Positions 7,589 to 60,748 of a stretch of DNA of 64,000 nucleotides are shown here, one piece after another. The stretch is from sequence record MN794232.1; one strand, given 5' to 3'. Below the pieces are notes generated by a model. That model did no database searches and was not told the origin of the DNA. It saw only the letters and a program-made list of their open reading frames with translations. The stretch's first letter is position 1, and the number at the start of each line of letters is the position of its first letter. Both the position numbers and the translations under genes were made by a program.

Positions 7589-9424
7589 ATGAAAGACGAC
7601 ATTTTAGACATTGTTAGCGGTTCGGGTAATATTAAAGAAAATGCCAATAAAGACTCGAAAGTGATCCCTACAATGCGTGACTTGGTAGCTGGTACAGTGT
7701 CGAAACAATATGCACTGGAAGAATATCTACCGAAGCACATTGCAGACGCTCATATCGACGGCGATATTCATTTTCACGACCTTGATTACAGCCCACTATT
7801 CCCACAATTCAACTGTATGCTTATCGACATCAAGGGGATGTTCGAAGGTGGGTTCAAAATGGGTAACGCTGAAATTGAAGAGCCAAATAGCATTGCGACT
7901 GCTGCTACTATCGTAACTCAGATCATTCAGCAAGTAAGCAGCCACATCTATGGCGGCAACACAATCAATCGCATCGACGAAGTGCTTGCTCCTTATGTTC
8001 GCAAGTCGTACTACAAATGGTTAGAAATCGGTCGAGAAGAACATCCAGATTCAGATTCAAAAGCCGCGATCTTTGCTCGTAAACGTGTTGAGAAAGAAAC
8101 GTATGATGCGTTTCAGACTTTTGAATACCAAGTCAATACAATGCAGACTTCAAATGGTCAGACACCATTCACGACAATCAACTTCGGTTTAGGCACGTCG
8201 TGGGAAGAGAAACTGATTCAGAAAAGCATTCTGCAAAATCGTATTGCTGGTCTAGGCAAGACTAAGAAAACTGCTATCTTCCCGAAACTTGTTTTCACGT
8301 TGAAAGACGGTGTTAACTTGAAAGAAGGTGATCCGTGCTACGGTATCAAGAAGCTTGCTCTTGAATGTGCAAGTAAACGCATGTACCCAGACATCTTGAA
8401 CTATGAAAAGCTAGTTGAAACAACTGGTGGATTTAAGTCGCCGATGGGATGTCGTTCATTCTTGGGTGATTGGAAAAATGAAGACGGTGAGACTGTATTC
8501 GACGGTCGTAATAACTTAGGTGTTGTTTCTATCAACATCCCGCGTATTGCCATCGAAGCATCGGGAGACACTGAACGTTTCTTCGAGATCTTGCACGAAC
8601 GTTGTACACTAGCTTACGAAGCGTTGATGCTGCGTATCAAGCGTTTTGACGATGTTACTGCATCAGTTGCACCGATTCTATATTGTGAAGGCGCAATGGG
8701 CGTACGCTTGAAGCCAACTGATAAAGTCAGTGAAGTGTTCAAGAACGGTCGCGCAAGTATTTCACTCGGTTACATCGGTCTGCATGAAGCTGTAACGCTG
8801 CTTTCGCCTGACAAAGACATGCATACATTCGAGTCGCAGCACAAGCAATTCCTTGCTGAAAAGATTGTTGAGACGCTTAGAGCGTACACAGACGCATGGA
8901 AAGAACTGACTGGCTATGGCTTCAGTCTATACAGCACACCAAGCGAATCGCTGTGTGACCGTTTCTGTCGTCTCGACCAAGAGAAATACGGTATCATTAC
9001 TGGTATCAACGACAAAGACTATTACACGAACTCGTTCCACTTAGATGTGTTCAAGAAAGTGAACCCGTTTGAGAAGATTGATTTCGAAGCAGCATACCCT
9101 ATGTACGCGAATGGTGGTTTCATCTGCTATGCTGAATTCCCGAACATGCGAGACAACATCAAAGGTCTAGAGCGCGTATGGGATTACGCATACACGAAAG
9201 TTGCGTACTTCGGCACAAACACGCCTATTGACCAGTGTACTTGTGGTTGGTCTGGTGAAGCACATACAGATTCGGATGGTTATTCATGTCCTGTATGTGG
9301 CGAACGCGACCCTGAAAAATTACACGTGACACGTCGTGTCTGTGGCTATCTCGGTAACCCGGGTGCTCGTGGATGGAATCACGGCAAGACTGTCGAAATG
9401 CAAAATCGAGTTAAACACTGTTAA
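7589..9424 (+). CDS. nrdD: Anaerobic ribonucleotide reductase large subunit
   Basis: HIDGDIHFHDLDY, SPMGCRSFL, YTNSFH, C-terminal CxC/CxxC and glycyl-radical motif RRVCGYLG; no intron. Confidence 0.97.
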   Translation: MKDDILDIVSGSGNIKENANKDSKVIPTMRDLVAGTVSKQYALEEYLPKHIADAHIDGDIHFHDLDYSPLFPQFNCMLIDIKGMFEGGFKMGNAEIEEPNSIATAATIVTQIIQQVSSHIYGGNTINRIDEVLAPYVRKSYYKWLEIGREEHPDSDSKAAIFARKRVEKETYDAFQTFEYQVNTMQTSNGQTPFTTINFGLGTSWEEKLIQKSILQNRIAGLGKTKKTAIFPKLVFTLKDGVNLKEGDPCYGIKKLALECASKRMYPDILNYEKLVETTGGFKSPMGCRSFLGDWKNEDGETVFDGRNNLGVVSINIPRIAIEASGDTERFFEILHERCTLAYEALMLRIKRFDDVTASVAPILYCEGAMGVRLKPTDKVSEVFKNGRASISLGYIGLHEAVTLLSPDKDMHTFESQHKQFLAEKIVETLRAYTDAWKELTGYGFSLYSTPSESLCDRFCRLDQEKYGIITGINDKDYYTNSFHLDVFKKVNPFEKIDFEAAYPMYANGGFICYAEFPNMRDNIKGLERVWDYAYTKVAYFGTNTPIDQCTCGWSGEAHTDSDGYSCPVCGERDPEKLHVTRRVCGYLGNPGARGWNHGKTVEMQNRVKHC

Positions 9425-9425
9425 G

Positions 9426-9449
9426 AAAGCGCCTTCGGGCGCTTTTTTT
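9426..9449 (+). terminator. Intrinsic terminator with cUUCGg loop
   Basis: AAAGCGCC-TTCG-GGCGCTTT plus T run. Confidence 0.9.
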
Positions 9450-9469: not shown

Positions 9470-9498
9470 TTGCAACGCGAATCAGAAGTGCGTAATAT
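9470..9498 (+). promoter_or_regulatory. Class I early promoter
   Basis: AAAAAGG-TTGCAA-17nt-TAATAT, then shared leader ...CATCGA...GAGAGAAACATTATG. Confidence 0.8.
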
Positions 9499-9541: not shown

Positions 9542-9961
9542 ATGCTATACATCAACTTGACTACTTGCATCGTTATCGACGAACATTCAGTAGCTGAACA
9601 GTGCCGCATTCGAGAGGGTCACAATGTTGAATCTCGATGGGATTGGGATTCACTTGAGCGAGTTACTGAAGTCTGTAATATGCTTGACCAAGATCTATAC
9701 ATGGTTACAGACGAAGGTTCTGGCTGCTCACCGCGCTTTGACATTATCAAAAAACCACGTGTAGGTGATTCAGTTAGCTATTGTTTCAATGGTGACAGTC
9801 GTCCCGACGGTGAAATCACTAAGATTTCAAAAACAATGAAAATGATCACGACATCAACTGGCAGCAAATACTATCGCCGTAAGTTGACTGGTCGATGGGT
9901 TCGGGGCGGCTGTTGGACGTTAGTACACGGTCATGTGTCTAAAATGAATGAGGAATTTTAA
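9542..9961 (+). CDS. Hypothetical early protein (start corrected to ATG 9542)
   Basis: The track's TTG start at 9470 is the promoter -35 box; ATG 9542 follows the conserved GAGAGA leader. Confidence 0.8.
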   Translation: MLYINLTTCIVIDEHSVAEQCRIREGHNVESRWDWDSLERVTEVCNMLDQDLYMVTDEGSGCSPRFDIIKKPRVGDSVSYCFNGDSRPDGEITKISKTMKMITTSTGSKYYRRKLTGRWVRGGCWTLVHGHVSKMNEEF

Positions 9962-10530
9962 TGTATTTCCCACGAGAGCGACGAGTTCCTGTCATGCAGC
10001 CAACGCCTTTAGCTGTTGGCAGTATGGTTCGAGTATACGTTGATCAAAAACAATATCTCGGTGCTAAATTTGTGTATCAAGGCGAGTGTGAAGAGTACAT
10101 TCTGTATGATTACATGAACACTGAGACTTTCATTGTCGAGAATGGTCTAATACGCTCAAACACAAGCGGATTATTGATCTCGCGCATCGAAGAGCAAGAA
10201 ACATGTCAAGAACTGTTTATGCACGACGGTGTCCTGTCATACAATACAGAAACATTTGAAACGAAGATGGAATATGTTCGTATCAAAGCGGGCGACAAGA
10301 TCAAAGTCTATATGAACTGTCAGTTCTCACCTAGACAAGAAGAAGCAACGGTTGTGTTCTGTAATGACGACTTTCTAACCGTTGTTTGCGACGGTATACC
10401 GTTTACATTTTCTCGTCGTGAAGTTATGTGCAAAAATATTGTTCATGTGTCTAACGACGGTATCAGAGAATCTTGCCGCATAAACGAAGACGTTTTTGTA
10501 GGTATCCCTAGTGAAGTATCAAAAAATTAA
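9961..10530 (+). CDS. Hypothetical protein
   Basis: 189 aa, TAATG coupling, RBS GAGG. Confidence 0.7.
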   Translation: MYFPRERRVPVMQPTPLAVGSMVRVYVDQKQYLGAKFVYQGECEEYILYDYMNTETFIVENGLIRSNTSGLLISRIEEQETCQELFMHDGVLSYNTETFETKMEYVRIKAGDKIKVYMNCQFSPRQEEATVVFCNDDFLTVVCDGIPFTFSRREVMCKNIVHVSNDGIRESCRINEDVFVGIPSEVSKN

Positions 10531-10987
10531 CGAATTTGATTTTGCAAACGGCGAAGGTGTTCGATTGAGCATCTTCGTTTCTGGTTGTGAGCATCGCTGT
10601 GCGGGCTGCTACAACGAATCGACGTGGGACTCGAACGATGGTATTGATTTTACCGAAGAAACGCTTAGAGACGTTCTGACGAGCTTAGAAAAGCACGATG
10701 GTTTGAGTCTCACGGGCGGGGATCCGTTATATCCGAGTAATCGCGAAGCGATTTTGCGTATTTGCAAAGCAGTGAAAGAACGCTATCCCGACAAAGACAT
10801 TTGGATGTGGAGCGGGTACAAGTTGTCTCATGTTTATCATTTAGAGATAATGAATTACATTGATGTTTTCATTGATGGACGCTACAAGAGACATCAACCA
10901 ACGCAGAAAGCGTGGCGCGGTTCTGACAATCAAATATTGTACGTTCGGGTAAATGATGAATTAGTTATTGACGAAGAGAGAAATTAA
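10511..10987 (+). CDS. nrdG: Anaerobic RNR activase (radical SAM)
   Basis: NGEGVRLSIFVSGCEHRCAGCYN, LSLTGGDPL, WRGSDNQ. Confidence 0.95.
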   Translation: MKYQKINEFDFANGEGVRLSIFVSGCEHRCAGCYNESTWDSNDGIDFTEETLRDVLTSLEKHDGLSLTGGDPLYPSNREAILRICKAVKERYPDKDIWMWSGYKLSHVYHLEIMNYIDVFIDGRYKRHQPTQKAWRGSDNQILYVRVNDELVIDEERN

Positions 10988-11511
10988 TGAGTTGTGTTTG
11001 GATTACAAGTGACTTGCATTTAGGTCACAGAAATATTGGTAAGTTTCGCGACGGGATTGAAGACACTCAAGCGAACACCGACTGGATTGTTGACTTCTGG
11101 CTGAAGAACGTTCGCAAGCGTGACACTGTGATCATGCTTGGCGATACTGCATTCACTGAAGAAGCTATTGGCATTCTTGCGGGTCTACCGGGTCGTAAAG
11201 TACAATATGGCGGAAATCACGACGACCTGCCTGTTTCAAGCTACATGCGTGCATTTGACGTAATCCGTGGTTGTGAGAAGTTCAAGAAGCTTGGATGGTT
11301 GAGTCATTTCCCTCTACACCCTGCTGAATTACGTGGTCATTTCAGCATTCATGGTCACGTGCATTACGAAACAATTGACGACTATCGTTATGTTAACGTT
11401 TGCTGTGACAATTTGCAACGTCACATTGGTCAACCGATGATCCGTCTTACCGATTTGCGGCAACTTCTTGACAAACGACGCGAGTCTAAAGAGGTCAGTT
11501 ACGACTTCTAG
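10987..11511 (+). CDS. Calcineurin-like metallophosphoesterase
   Basis: SDLHLGH, LGD, GNHD, SHFP, HGHVH. Confidence 0.85.
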   Translation: MSCVWITSDLHLGHRNIGKFRDGIEDTQANTDWIVDFWLKNVRKRDTVIMLGDTAFTEEAIGILAGLPGRKVQYGGNHDDLPVSSYMRAFDVIRGCEKFKKLGWLSHFPLHPAELRGHFSIHGHVHYETIDDYRYVNVCCDNLQRHIGQPMIRLTDLRQLLDKRRESKEVSYDF

Positions 11512-11534
11512 AACGTAGTCTATCTGCATGAACA

Positions 11535-11542
11535 TCTAAATA
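11535..11542 (+). promoter_or_regulatory. Late promoter candidate TCTAAATA inside an RBS-occluding hairpin
   Basis: Variant of the T4 late box TATAAATA; flanked by perfect 10-bp inverted repeat 11525-11534/11564-11573. Confidence 0.7.
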
Positions 11543-11575
11543 CTGGTATGGTATTAAAGATGGTGTTCATGCACT

Positions 11576-12421
11576 ATGATAGATGTTTTGTTAAGATATG
11601 ACGCAAGGATCATCAATAGCAGAAAGATAGTCATCTATACAGATGAAAATCGTCTCAGTCTTATTGTGAAACTCGCGAAAGAGCTTAACGGGACGTACAA
11701 GAAGTGCGATCCCGGTAGTTCAATTGGTTGTATACAGATGGAAAAATGCAGAGTATACGTCAAACCAACATCTAATCCTGGCATCGAGAATGAACGCAAT
11801 TTCTATACTATTGTAAAGCAACACATTGATTCTGGCTGTACGCGGATTAAAATTGGTGGGCGTCTTATAAAAGGTGTTCAGTCAATCGAAATGACTGGTC
11901 ACGACACGAAAAACAATAAGAAAGCCGATATGGTCTTGAAAACAGACAAAGGCGACTTTCCGATTTCAATCAAAAAATCAAATGCAGAACGTTGGGCGAG
12001 TACTGACGTTATTCACGGCACAGAAGCATGTAAGCTGTTAAATCGCATGGTAGACAAGAAAATCGTCACACTAACCGATTTCTCAGATGACGGAAAAGTA
12101 AAACGACTGAGCCAGCCCATTGCTAGACGACTTAGAGACGATGAGATTAATCACGTTGTATTCGGGTCTGATATTCTCGGGAAGGGTCTTGTTGTCGTCA
12201 ATAGCTTTACTCTAGATGATTTTGTATTCAAGCGCGGTACTTTACATATTAGCGGTGAAGTGCTTTTAGATTCGAGTGATGTAAAAGACACAATTTACCA
12301 CCCATATATGATGATTAGAAATGATGCATGTCGCCGCTCGAAGGCATTGCCTTATGGTGTACGTGTTGAAGTTGTATTCGAGTCAAGAATTACTAAAAAT
12401 ACGATTGTTTACGAGGAGTAG
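11576..12421 (+). CDS. Putative PD-(D/E)xK-fold endonuclease
   Basis: GIENE ... KKADMVL ... FPISIKK pattern (E, D, S-x-K). Confidence 0.5.
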   Translation: MIDVLLRYDARIINSRKIVIYTDENRLSLIVKLAKELNGTYKKCDPGSSIGCIQMEKCRVYVKPTSNPGIENERNFYTIVKQHIDSGCTRIKIGGRLIKGVQSIEMTGHDTKNNKKADMVLKTDKGDFPISIKKSNAERWASTDVIHGTEACKLLNRMVDKKIVTLTDFSDDGKVKRLSQPIARRLRDDEINHVVFGSDILGKGLVVVNSFTLDDFVFKRGTLHISGEVLLDSSDVKDTIYHPYMMIRNDACRRSKALPYGVRVEVVFESRITKNTIVYEE

Positions 12422-12424
12422 CTA

Positions 12425-13249
12425 ATGGCTATCAAAGATAAATTGGAAGAACTTATTGCGTCGGTTCACCAATGTACTACAAAAGACGGCGTAGTTGAAA
12501 TTGAAAAACTATATACGCAAAAGAAAAAAGAACTCGGTGCCAACATCACCCCGATGATGGATATTCGCGTTCGTGACGCAATTCGTGGTAAAATCACGAT
12601 GTTCGATAAAGAAAATGCTGCTGCTAAAGAAGAAGCTAGACGCAAAAAACAACAAGAAGAAGCTGAAGCAATTGCGGCTAAACTCGATGAGGGTCTTTTT
12701 GTTGTTTCAGAGAAAGAGTTCTTTGATCACGAAACCGTTGTGAATGAATGTGCGATTGATGCTGCGTGTATTATGGACGTAGACTCAAGCATCCCTTCTG
12801 TTGGTCATAAAGAACTGACTAAAACGCTTTCCGAGGCATGTGAGCATGTTGGTGCAGTAGGTAAAATATTTGTACCTGAGTCACAGAACAAAGTATTGTC
12901 GCTGCAAGAGCGCGTTGAACTATTTGAATCATTCTCAGACGTTGATGTTGCACCCAAAGGTGTGATGTTTGCTGAGGTTGAGAACATGATTCAGAAAGGC
13001 ATTACTCGTGTGTTTGCATTCGTAGAAGCGAATAAAGTCGCGGAGTACCGTCGTCTCGGTCGCCATTTCTTGCGTGTTGGTGGCACTCGCCTTGAGATTG
13101 TTGAAGTCAAGAACAAAGTACCATCTAGCACGATTGAAAATCTGATTCGTGAGGATAATCTCATTGAGTTTATGCGTAGTGTACCGATGCCATTAAACGA
13201 AGCCGAGAAGATCTTTGATCGTCAGCTTGAACAACTACTGGGGGCGTAA
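12425..13249 (+). CDS. Degenerate cytidyltransferase/nucleotidyltransferase-like protein
   Basis: C-terminal IPSVGHKEL and SSTIENLIREDNLIEFMRSVP resemble T4-like phage cytidyltransferase-family motifs, but eroded. Confidence 0.4.
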   Translation: MAIKDKLEELIASVHQCTTKDGVVEIEKLYTQKKKELGANITPMMDIRVRDAIRGKITMFDKENAAAKEEARRKKQQEEAEAIAAKLDEGLFVVSEKEFFDHETVVNECAIDAACIMDVDSSIPSVGHKELTKTLSEACEHVGAVGKIFVPESQNKVLSLQERVELFESFSDVDVAPKGVMFAEVENMIQKGITRVFAFVEANKVAEYRRLGRHFLRVGGTRLEIVEVKNKVPSSTIENLIREDNLIEFMRSVPMPLNEAEKIFDRQLEQLLGA

Positions 13250-13732: not shown

Positions 13733-13755
13733 GCCTCGTTTTCGGGGCTTTTTTT
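13733..13755 (+). terminator. Intrinsic terminator
   Basis: GCCTCG-TTTT-CGGGGC plus T7. Confidence 0.75.
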
Positions 13756-15598: not shown

Positions 15599-16287
15599 GT
15601 GATAAACCCGTCTATGACATTCTAATCGACTATGAGGGATTCGACGTGACTCCCGACGCAGCGGTTATCGAACTAGGTGCAGTTGAATTCGAGCACGATT
15701 TTACTAAAGTTCCCGATTATCAAGAGCTTGTGAAGAACTCGTTTCGCTGTAAGTTTGAGATTAAATCTCAAAAAGGCAAACGCAGCATCAATAAAGCGAC
15801 TGTGCAATGGTGGTCTGAGCAGTCGCAAGAAGCGAAAGAAATTCTAATCCCAAGCGCAGAAGACGTGACGGTTGAAGAAGGTCATAAGCTTTTTATCGAG
15901 TGGATTGAACAAAACACTCGTTACGACGGTCGTTCTCATTTCTACTGCCGTGGCAACAACTACGATATTCCGCTAATGGCTGACTGTTTCCGTTACAGCG
16001 GTTTGCGTCATGCGATCATCGAGCGATTCTGGAAATTTCGTGACGTTCGTACTCGTATTGAAGCATTGATGCTGCAACGCGACATGTGTAAAGTGCCGAT
16101 TCGACGTGATGCAATGCCAGGGTTTATTCACCACAACGGCGTTCACGACTGTGCTAAAGATGCAATGATGCTTATCATGGCAGCGCGTTACGCACTTGAC
16201 TTAGAAGATCTGCCCGAAAAAATGGAATGCCATGAAGTATCGGTTGACTTCACTGACGAAGAGAAAGAGGAACTTGGGCTACTATGA
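15595..16287 (+). CDS. dexA: Exonuclease A (DEDD)
   Basis: ILIDYE, ATVQWWSEQS, YCRGNNYDIP, RDVRTRIE, HNGVHDCAKD. Confidence 0.9.
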   Translation: MSDKPVYDILIDYEGFDVTPDAAVIELGAVEFEHDFTKVPDYQELVKNSFRCKFEIKSQKGKRSINKATVQWWSEQSQEAKEILIPSAEDVTVEEGHKLFIEWIEQNTRYDGRSHFYCRGNNYDIPLMADCFRYSGLRHAIIERFWKFRDVRTRIEALMLQRDMCKVPIRRDAMPGFIHHNGVHDCAKDAMMLIMAARYALDLEDLPEKMECHEVSVDFTDEEKEELGLL

Positions 16288-16452: not shown

Positions 16453-16481
16453 TTGCGTTGTCGATGTGACTTGTGTAATAT
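16453..16481 (+). promoter_or_regulatory. Class I early promoter within a perfect 14-bp palindrome
   Basis: TTGCGT-17nt-TAATAT; arms 16456-16469/16484-16497. Confidence 0.8.
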
Positions 16482-16513
16482 ACTCACATCGACAACGAAA
16501 AGAGAATATTATT

Positions 16514-34931: not shown

Positions 34932-34959
34932 TGTGAAATAAATCACGAAAAAGTAGTTT

Positions 34960-34995
34960 TCGGGTATTGACAATAACACATCAATACCCGATAAT
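34960..34995 (+). promoter_or_regulatory. Class I early promoter with 11-bp palindrome over the -35/spacer
   Basis: TCGGGTATTGA-10nt-TCAATACCCGA; TTGACA-17nt-GATAAT; conserved leader. Confidence 0.7.
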
Positions 34996-48472: not shown

Positions 48473-48500
48473 TGTTTTTATTATGCTGTTGAGATTAATC

Positions 48501-48881
48501 ATGGACATTATTAACAAACTTGAAATTCAATTACCAGATGACGATGCCTTTCTAAAGATTCGCGAGACTCTAACGCGAATTGGCATCGCCAATAACAAAA
48601 CAAACACTCTGTACCAGTCATGTCATATTCTTCAGAAGCGTGGCGTTTACTTTCTGGTACACTTCAAAGAGCTTTTAGCACTTGACGGTCGTTGTGTGGA
48701 AATCACTGCTGAAGACATTGAACGACGCAACAACATCGCCAAGTTACTCGAAGATTGGAACTTGTGTAAGATTGCTCACCCTGAGTCACACGAATTCACA
48801 GGTGACAATAAGTTCCGCGTGATTTCGTTCCGCGATTCTAAAAACTGGAATCTAAGGTACAAATACAAAATCGGTGGCTAA
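48501..48881 (+). CDS. regA: Translational repressor RegA
   Basis: FLKIRETLTRIGIA, LYQSCHILQKRG, HFKELLALDG, WNLRYKYKIG. Confidence 0.96.
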   Translation: MDIINKLEIQLPDDDAFLKIRETLTRIGIANNKTNTLYQSCHILQKRGVYFLVHFKELLALDGRCVEITAEDIERRNNIAKLLEDWNLCKIAHPESHEFTGDNKFRVISFRDSKNWNLRYKYKIGG

Positions 48882-53592: not shown

Positions 53593-53865
53593 ATGCACCA
53601 CTTTGTATTTCAAAACGGGGAGCCGATGCGAGTCGGCAACCCACAAGAGTTCATAGAAAAATTCAACAAATATTTCCTACCAGAGCTGCAAAAACGATTA
53701 GATGACGACCCGAAAACTCGCGGTGGTCGAATCGTGTATGCGGGCCCTTCTAAAACAGACACTATTCAAGGCATTGATGTTCAAATCATGGACAAAGATG
53801 GTATCGTGTCTACGTTTTACGTGAATGTCTTCACACAGACGTTCAGTCCTGTCTTCTACCAGTGA
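53593..53865 (+). CDS. Hypothetical protein
   Basis: 90 aa, RBS GAGG. Confidence 0.7.
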   Translation: MHHFVFQNGEPMRVGNPQEFIEKFNKYFLPELQKRLDDDPKTRGGRIVYAGPSKTDTIQGIDVQIMDKDGIVSTFYVNVFTQTFSPVFYQ

Positions 53866-53871
53866 TAAATA
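53864..53871 (+). promoter_or_regulatory. Late promoter candidate GATAAATA at the base of an RBS-occluding hairpin
   Basis: One mismatch to consensus; stem 53870-53880/53886-53896 contains RBS GGGAG. Confidence 0.72.
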
Positions 53872-53901
53872 CTCCCGTATGAATAATATGGGAGTAATAT
53901 C

Positions 53902-54285
53902 ATGTTCGCACAATACAAAATCTATGTGCTATTGGCTATTGCTGCTGTGTTCATTGGGTCTATTGGTTATCTGAAGTATGAGAATGTTAGTCTTGAGAAA
54001 GAACTAGTCACTCAAATTGCTGAAGTCGAACGACTGACTGGTGATAATGAACGCTTGCACGCGACTGTTGAAAGCAAAGACCGCACAATCGAGAACTGGC
54101 GTTCAGTTTACAACGAGCAAGAGCAGTATCGAAGCAAACTTCAGAAAGATCTAGACGAACTAACCGCAACTATAGACACGTATAAGTCACGTCAAGACAT
54201 CGTGTTTAAAAAGCCAGGTCTAGTTCAGATTAAAGAGCAGAAAGCTCTTGATAAGTTCTTTGATGAGGTGCGCAATGGTCAATAA
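53902..54285 (+). CDS. Inner-membrane spanin (Rz-like, pseT.3 position)
   Basis: N-terminal TM plus coiled coil; KKPGLV motif; synteny rnlA-spanins-pseT. Confidence 0.85.
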   Translation: MFAQYKIYVLLAIAAVFIGSIGYLKYENVSLEKELVTQIAEVERLTGDNERLHATVESKDRTIENWRSVYNEQEQYRSKLQKDLDELTATIDTYKSRQDIVFKKPGLVQIKEQKALDKFFDEVRNGQ

Positions 54286-60691: not shown

Positions 60692-60722
60692 TGTTTAATC
60701 TCTCTTGTTTATTGATTATAAT
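60692..60722 (+). promoter_or_regulatory. Class II promoter with -10 in the loop of an RBS hairpin
   Basis: TGTTTAAT, TTTAAT-17nt-TATAAT; arms 60700-60709/60731-60740. Confidence 0.78.
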
Positions 60723-60748
60723 TTAAGCATAACAAGAGAGGTGAACAA

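Follow-up and report, generated by a model that had tools for sequence, protein, structure and literature searches.

A hairpin around a putative late promoter at the start of a nuclease-like gene in a KVP40-type Vibrio phage: a probable T4-type early-off/late-on translation switch

Introduction

Several genes of the T4 family carry a documented lock of the RBS, namely e, soc, 49, I-TevI to I-TevIII, segB and Aeh1 mobE (PMC3014915, PMC2988022), and metagenomic phage endonuclease genes with the same layout have been described as well (PMC2677866). In the T4 e and soc leaders, the early read-through RNA forms a helix over the SD and the AUG, and a late promoter located in or beside the 5′ strand gives a shorter, translatable RNA (PMC3014915). 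T4 gene 49, which encodes endonuclease VII, a DNA-processing nuclease, is hairpin-blocked on the long early RNA and freed on the late RNA (PMC3014915). For I-TevI, I-TevII, I-TevIII, T4 segB and Aeh1 mobE, the nuclease gene lies in an early nucleotide-metabolism unit, its RBS is sequestered and the late promoter is placed such that the late RNA loses the inhibitory strand (PMC2988022). According to the T4 rule, the late motif occupies positions -13 to -6 (PMC1524935). The late consensus sequences given for KVP40 are T4-like, and that of Aeromonas phage Aeh1 is CTAAATA (PMC2988020, PMC1524935).

Here, an element of this layout is described at the start of a 281-aa ORF in a KVP40-type Vibrio phage. 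Like the e and soc leaders, it combines a predicted helix over the SD and AUG of a read-through RNA with a putative late promoter at the 5′ strand. It differs from them in its octamer, which is TCTAAATA and not TATAAATA, in its longer, three-tiered hairpin that reaches into codons 1-3 and in its gene, which encodes a nuclease-like protein. The C at -12 of the octamer is shared with the late motif of Aeh1 (PMC1524935). As for the I-TevI-type genes, segB and mobE, the gene appears to be part of an early nucleotide-metabolism unit, here too with nrd genes, and its RBS seems sequestered until a late RNA loses the inhibitory strand. However, those genes encode sporadic mobile GIY-YIG or HNH enzymes, whereas the present gene is fixed and syntenic and its product has a predicted restriction-enzyme-like fold. 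A further parallel would be gene 49, also a DNA-processing nuclease, although its product and the 281-aa protein have unrelated folds.

Gene neighbourhood and early transcription unit

The window, i.e. the whole stretch of DNA analysed, comprises the left 64 kb of a KVP40-type Vibrio myovirus (MN794232.1), and positions are counted from its first letter. It is 100% identical to Vibrio phage VH1_2019, with the same coordinates, 99.8% identical to phi-pp2 and 99.1% identical to KVP40. The phage belongs to the KVP40 (Schizotequatrovirus) branch, which is distant from T4. The locus consists of the following features:

9423-9448 and 13733-13748, terminator-like sites found by a scan of the sequence
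9470-9498, + strand, candidate sigma70-type early promoter (TTGCAA, 17-nt spacer, TAATAT), just after the terminator at 9423-9448
10987-11511, phosphoesterase gene, the upstream neighbour, with its stop codon 7 nt before the hairpin
11576-12421, + strand, ORF of 281 aa with its ATG at 11576, homologue of KVP40.0017, nuclease-like, annotated as a hypothetical protein
12425-13249, + strand, downstream gene of 274 aa with an N-terminal UvsW.1 domain and its own SD

Between 9448 and 13733, no convincing terminator was retrieved, the only other + strand match (10390-10403) being a weak 5-bp stem within the coding sequence of ORF 9961-10530. Given the candidate early promoter at 9470-9498 and the lack of a convincing terminator before 13733, the nuclease-like ORF appears to be embedded in an nrdG-containing early unit of the sigma70 type.

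In all KVP40-type loci that were compared (L014-L019), with identities as low as 48%, a UvsW.1-domain gene (~270 aa) follows the nuclease-like gene. In Xanthomonas phage X1 (L051), the nuclease-like homologue instead follows a RecA/UvsX-like gene. Such UvsW.1 and UvsX-like neighbours hint at a link between the nuclease-like family and recombination.

Hairpin over the start of the 281-aa ORF

The initial annotation had described two arms, 11525-11534 and 11564-11573, that pair perfectly around a late-promoter-like octamer just before the ATG. All of its coordinates and letters (arms, octamer, ATG and ORF) proved exact on rechecking, and the 10-bp pairing is confirmed. Based on minimum-energy folds, this repeat is the core of a larger, three-tiered hairpin of 67 nt (11518-11584), built from three stems:

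11518-11524 with 11578-11584, + strand, outer stem of 7 bp, the 3′ strand of which takes in the G of the AUG and codons 2-3
11525-11536 with 11562-11573, + strand, main stem of 12 bp, the 5′ arm of which is the anti-RBS strand
11539-11544 with 11550-11555, + strand, inner stem of 6 bp, which pairs part of the octamer; the apical loop lies within 11539-11555

The octamer TCTAAATA is indeed found at 11535-11542, but its description as lying in the loop has to be adjusted, as it belongs to an apical part in which the inner stem partly pairs it. Moreover, the last two bases of the main-stem 5′ arm are the first two of the octamer, the 'TC' of which contributes a U.G and a C-G pair to the main stem.

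The hairpin has a predicted free energy of -24.8 kcal/mol, compared to -10.9 ± 2.5 kcal/mol in 200 dinucleotide shuffles (z -5.6), none of which is as stable (0/200). Perfect inverted repeats of at least 10 bp, with separate arms at most 45 nt apart, number only about five in the 64 kb. The SD candidate is weak: it consists of GGUG at 11562-11565, 10 nt from the AUG, and lies entirely in the 3′ arm of the main stem. Both this GGUG and G11578 of the AUG are paired in the fold. Opening the region from -16 to +6 costs 18.3 kcal/mol in the long RNA of the window versus 8.7 kcal/mol in its predicted late RNA, and across the loci compared, opening of the RBS takes 16-22 kcal/mol in the long RNA versus 4-10 kcal/mol in the predicted late RNA. 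The predicted late leader of the window can still form a weak stem of -7 kcal/mol over the SD; given this residual stem and the weak SD, late translation may be modest.

Putative late promoter within the hairpin

Two features define the predicted start of a late RNA:

11535-11542, + strand, TCTAAATA, putative gp55-type late promoter at positions -13 to -6, constant in 10 relatives
11548, + strand, A, predicted late transcription start, 6 nt past the octamer, placed by the T4 -13 to -6 rule

A start at 11548 would leave a late leader of 28 nt that contains neither 5′ strand. When compared to the T4 consensus TATAAATA, TCTAAATA matches at seven of the eight positions and differs at -12, where it has a C. 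A C at this position is rare in T4, which counts against a T4-type switch at this site. Furthermore, because the octamer itself is partly base-paired, some of its conservation could be structural.

The window was joined to the rest of the KVP40 genome, and the regions 5′ of the named late genes were compared. The common late core upstream of these genes is NNTAAATA. It is preceded by TA at gp23, gp22, gp18, wac, gp25 and uvsW, by TC at gp19, gp48, KVP40.0353 and KVP40.0377, and by AC at gp4 and KVP40.0365. With both strands considered, 35 of the 91 TAAATA sites are in non-coding DNA, which makes up 7.8% of the genome, and nearly all of these 35 lie 11-50 nt 5′ of a gene on the same strand, including gp23, gp18, gp19, wac, gp25, gp48 and gp37. 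A sense motif is present within 60 nt upstream of 39 genes, as against 20.5 ± 4.5 in shuffles and nine for the antisense motif. Among the octamer forms of the late motif in KVP40, TCTAAATA ranks second in frequency, with 12 sites, seven of them upstream of genes, and it precedes gp19, gp48, KVP40.0353, KVP40.0372 and KVP40.0377. At the nuclease-like gene, the distance of 33 nt between octamer and AUG is typical of late genes (11-50 nt). These counts support TCTAAATA as a normal late-promoter variant in KVP40-type phages, though it is not the T4 consensus. The KVP40 genome paper reportedly lists 33 late promoters. The late factors gp55 and gp33 and the gp45 clamp are annotated in the gene table of phi-pp2 (PMC3468402), which is 99.8% identical to the window.

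No promoter is annotated at this locus in either GenBank or RefSeq, and the literature searched yielded nothing useful on a transcriptome or virion proteome of KVP40 or under the locus tags. A search of sequencing runs retrieved four with this DNA, all of them assembled contigs and none listed as RNA. A conserved promoter of the sigma70 type in the loop, TGGTATGGT at 11544-11552, was considered and rejected, as its letters vary among the relatives.

Some further sites in KVP40 deserve mention. At 215033-215040 and 220136-220143 (L013:11033-11040 and 16136-16143), TCTAAATA is found in the loop of, or directly after, terminator-like hairpins, with terminator and late promoter fused as one element upstream of KVP40.0353 and gp19. 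The consensus TATAAATA is found 32 nt upstream of KVP40.0146, a GIY-YIG homing endonuclease gene (KVP40 85800-85807, minus strand; L010:21800-21807), and no convincing RBS hairpin was found upstream of this gene (minimum free energy -10.5 kcal/mol). KVP40's own gene 49 homologue (KVP40.0131), located elsewhere, has no TAAATA within 90 nt upstream.

Conservation of the hairpin in relatives

Among ten isolates with flanks down to 74% identity, the hairpin region is nearly invariant, and the changes that do occur are concentrated in the apical loop and the unpaired spacer. The inner stem is kept among relatives while its loop letters vary, and the 5′ strand of the outer stem (11518-11524) is almost constant, with a varying first base, in relatives down to 70% protein identity. 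In the main stem of phage 1.081.O, a compensatory change has turned one C-G pair into U-A, and an A-U pair has become G.U; the latter fits an RNA of the + strand and not a symmetric DNA site.

A stronger test is provided by metagenomic homologues at 77, 70, 56, 51 and 48% protein identity. In all of these loci, (T/C)CTAAATA is kept 28-33 nt before the AUG, within a hairpin of which the 3′ arm ends 0-2 nt from the AUG. At the 56, 51 and 48% loci, the stem sequences share nothing with those of the window. The homologue hairpins, folded independently, have z-scores of -5.1 to -8.1 (70, 56, 51 and 48% loci). Stem position 3, counted outward from the motif, is A-U, U-A, C-G and G-C in four lineages, and several other positions switch between standard pairs as well. 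The upstream neighbour varies by locus (phosphoesterase, RNase H and others) and the downstream UvsW.1-domain gene is constant. Therefore, the hairpin belongs to the start of the nuclease-like gene and not to the end of the previous gene.

Since MAFFT combined with RNAalifold put the distant stems out of register, each sequence was folded on its own and compared to shuffles. A covariance model built from seven close relatives recovered its own clade, detected the 56% homologue weakly (E 0.21) and missed the 51 and 48% homologues, because it is dominated by primary sequence. The covariation described here thus comes from folds made independently and not from a single formal statistic on an alignment.

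A further 26 loci in IMG/VR code for relatives of 28-34% identity. TAAATA is present at most 60 nt upstream of the likely start in about 10 of the 18 distinct distant loci. Significant hairpins that abut the AUG and contain TAAATA are seen at some of them, such as L026 (z -4.4) and L038 (z -4.3). At others, the hairpin is marginal or absent, as at L033 and L031 (both z -2.0) and at L030, L028 and L024 (not significant). There is no room for the lock design in the Stenotrophomonas and Xanthomonas phages or the cyanophage-like contigs, where the nuclease-like gene overlaps or abuts the upstream gene. Across these loci, late expression looks frequent in the nuclease-like family and the RBS lock looks lineage-specific.

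The same design on other genes of the phage group

A comparable element precedes a lysis gene in the window:

53902-54285, Rz-like spanin gene (phrog_739)

The motif GATAAATA at 53864-53871 is directly followed by a hairpin at 53872-53896 (whole element 53864-53904), in which the 5′ strand CUCCC pairs with the GGGAG SD of the spanin gene. The predicted late start, 53877, falls within this 5′ strand. For the long form, the predicted free energy is -20.2 kcal/mol (z -5.1), compared to -3.5 kcal/mol for the late form. The stem is kept in phages nt-1, D480 and F86 with compensatory and wobble changes. This lock resembles that of T4 gene e, both being on lysis genes. In phi-ST2, the annotated TTG start of the spanin gene phiST2_0334 (L053:278) seems to be misplaced; a GTG located ~30 nt 5′ of it, aligned with the ATG of the other phages, is the homologous start.

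Another example is the fibritin gene wac of KVP40 (210140-210207; L013:6140-6207), where a 12-bp stem sequesters the AAGGGA SD and has TATAAATA in its loop. Here, the long form has -18.8 kcal/mol (z -4.1) and the predicted late RNA -2.5 kcal/mol.

Separately, three palindromes in the window (60695-60745, 16453-16500 and 34957-34994) carry -10 boxes of the sigma70 type (TATAAT, TAATAT) in their loops. The palindrome at 60695-60745 has the SD AAGAGAGGTGA of the following gene in its 3′ arm, and this element looks like an early-promoter version of the RBS lock.

The nuclease-like protein and its family

The 281-aa protein has no match in Pfam, in NCBIfam or in profiles against PDB sequences, and in PHROGs it is assigned only to the unnamed phrog_12709; no sequence profile ties the family to a known nuclease. 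A word-based search retrieved 15 relatives, compared to 493 cluster representatives (50% identity) in an exhaustive profile search, 215 of which score below 1e-30. All family members looked up are hypothetical proteins, several of them on contigs of 200-340 kb. No significant Pfam domain was found in any of the 89 family members scanned. In these 89 diverse members, E73, K116, D118, K133, F196, G197, D199, R253 and G261 show no variation and N72, S131, W140 and D144 almost none; positions 196-199 form an FG(S)D motif. The family could be defined as a new domain family.

In the AlphaFold2 model (pLDDT 88), E73 lies close to where the first long helix begins, D118 opens a strand, and the strand that follows carries S131-x-K133. 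This arrangement lends moderate support to E73/D118/S131-x-K133 as a PD-(D/E)xK site of canonical geometry, with Ser replacing the middle acid. In MspI and HinP1I, N or Q replaces the acid of the (D/E)xK motif, which is comparable to S131-x-K133. A fold search independent of Foldseek gave these monomeric type IIP enzymes, together with HhaI, as the best matches for residues 67-269, with HhaI at Z 6.4, MspI at 6.2 and HinP1I at 6.0 over 146-166 aligned residues, values of around Z 6 being in the range that the tool calls common and below its confidence level of about Z 8. I-Ssp6803I (Z 5.0) and Hjc (4.8) follow. There is no detectable sequence similarity to HhaI, MspI or HinP1I, and the phage protein has an additional N-terminal domain (residues 1-66) that resembles a small, nucleotidyltransferase-like alpha/beta unit. 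Foldseek returned only weak rows, and a language-model search lists a cluster with the R-HinP1I Pfam domain. No partner methyltransferase is found near the nuclease-like gene.

The PD-(D/E)xK-like label given by the initial annotation is therefore moderately supported by the fold matches at Z ~6 to HhaI, MspI and HinP1I and by the invariant E73, D118 and K133 with the nearly invariant S131. The nuclease assignment is probable, and the product would most likely be a DNA nuclease that depends on Mg, with a PD-(D/E)xK core like that of restriction enzymes and an active site of the form E...D...SxK.

In two cyanophage-like contigs (L020:6001-7062 and L021:1101-2228), the homologues (~30% identity) have 353-375 aa and a low-complexity C-terminal tail. 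They are flanked on one side by a bilin reductase gene (Fe_bilin_red), with a heme oxygenase further up in L020, and on the other side by DUF3307, followed by CsgF- and CsgG-like genes.

Alternative explanations

The hairpin could mainly act at the transcript level for the upstream gene, by attenuation or termination, as an RNase III site or by stabilising the 3′ end, in which case TAAATA would be incidental or structural. It does begin 7 nt past the phosphoesterase stop codon and is followed by a U-rich run (11585-11592), and TAAATA is also seen in or beside terminator-like hairpins at gp19 and KVP40.0353 of KVP40 and at locus L026. However, different lineages have different upstream genes, and in each of them the 3′ arm is directly adjacent to the AUG of the nuclease-like gene. 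In addition, with its 25 nt the apical part exceeds what the intrinsic-terminator pattern allows, the scan called no terminator here, and the octamer is constant while all pairing around it changes. We consider a role at the transcript end unlikely. The palindrome might also be a protein operator, either for the gene's own product or for a translational repressor, which would replace the passive lock or lie atop it. As a precedent for autorepression, the operator bound by I-TevI and the late promoter of the same gene overlap (PMC2988022). At the present locus, only the TAAATA motif is conserved in sequence outside the close clade, and the G.U pair in 1.081.O fits RNA pairing over a symmetric DNA site. 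Both observations argue against an operator, although within the KVP40 clade the 67 nt, unpaired letters included, are more conserved than the flanking coding DNA. The phage also encodes RegA (48483-48881), but RegA sites are AU-rich single strands and not stems. We consider an operator quite unlikely.

The initial annotation had also proposed a homing nuclease among its options, next to a toxic nuclease and a packaging-stage enzyme. A free-standing homing endonuclease that is silenced early, as are the T4 seg and mob genes, would fit the layout, which is typically found on homing endonuclease genes of the T4 family and on metagenomic phage endonuclease genes (PMC2677866). It would also fit the weak match (Z 5.0) of the predicted fold to I-Ssp6803I, a homing enzyme of the PD-(D/E)xK type. 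Since the gene is present and syntenic in 49 of 49 related phage records, and also in five metagenomic relatives, this option is unsupported and very unlikely. Its protein identity to relatives (80-92%) tracks that of the neighbours, it remains adjacent to the UvsW.1-domain gene in loci as distant as 48% identity, and with a GC content of 0.40 it is close to the window (0.425). The gene is most likely a vertically inherited phage gene beside recombination genes.

Proposed switch and implications

Based on the above, the hairpin is quite probably a T4-type early-off/late-on translation switch, and the nuclease-like protein is probably made only late in infection. This reading, already proposed in the initial annotation, is backed by all of the sequence-level tests, i.e. 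the octamer variant, the apparent early unit, the layout retained at 56, 51 and 48% identity and the recurrence at the spanin gene and wac. We infer the late start site, the translational block and the nuclease activity. Early in infection, the host sigma70 RNA polymerase would transcribe from ~9470 through nrdG, the phosphoesterase gene and the nuclease-like gene. On this long RNA, the hairpin at 11518-11584 would bury the GGUG and part of the AUG, such that no ribosome starts on the 281-aa ORF, and the UvsW.1-domain gene, having its own SD, would still be translated. Late, after the onset of replication, a polymerase directed by gp55, gp33 and gp45 would initiate at TCTAAATA within the hairpin, at ~11548. 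The resulting RNA would lack both 5′ strands, its start site would be far more open, and the protein would be made.

If this is correct, the early-off/late-on RBS lock of T4 extends to the distant KVP40 (Schizotequatrovirus) branch, where CTAAATA-type late promoters would be in regular use. It would be a new example of a known regulation, and the general view of how such regulation works is unchanged. The comparative support is unusually clear, with stems that are fully rewritten around a fixed promoter motif. An uncharacterised, widespread nuclease-like family would also be flagged as deliberately late, and this timing, together with the candidate catalytic residues, offers a handle on its function. 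It is a tentative and rather doubtful generalisation that the family as a whole is a restriction-enzyme-like nuclease expressed specifically late in T4-related marine and jumbo phages, often behind an RBS lock. If true, it would represent a previously unrecognised late DNA-processing function that is kept off during phage genome replication, for example one that clears branches or unwanted DNA before packaging, together with recombination genes of the UvsW/UvsX type.
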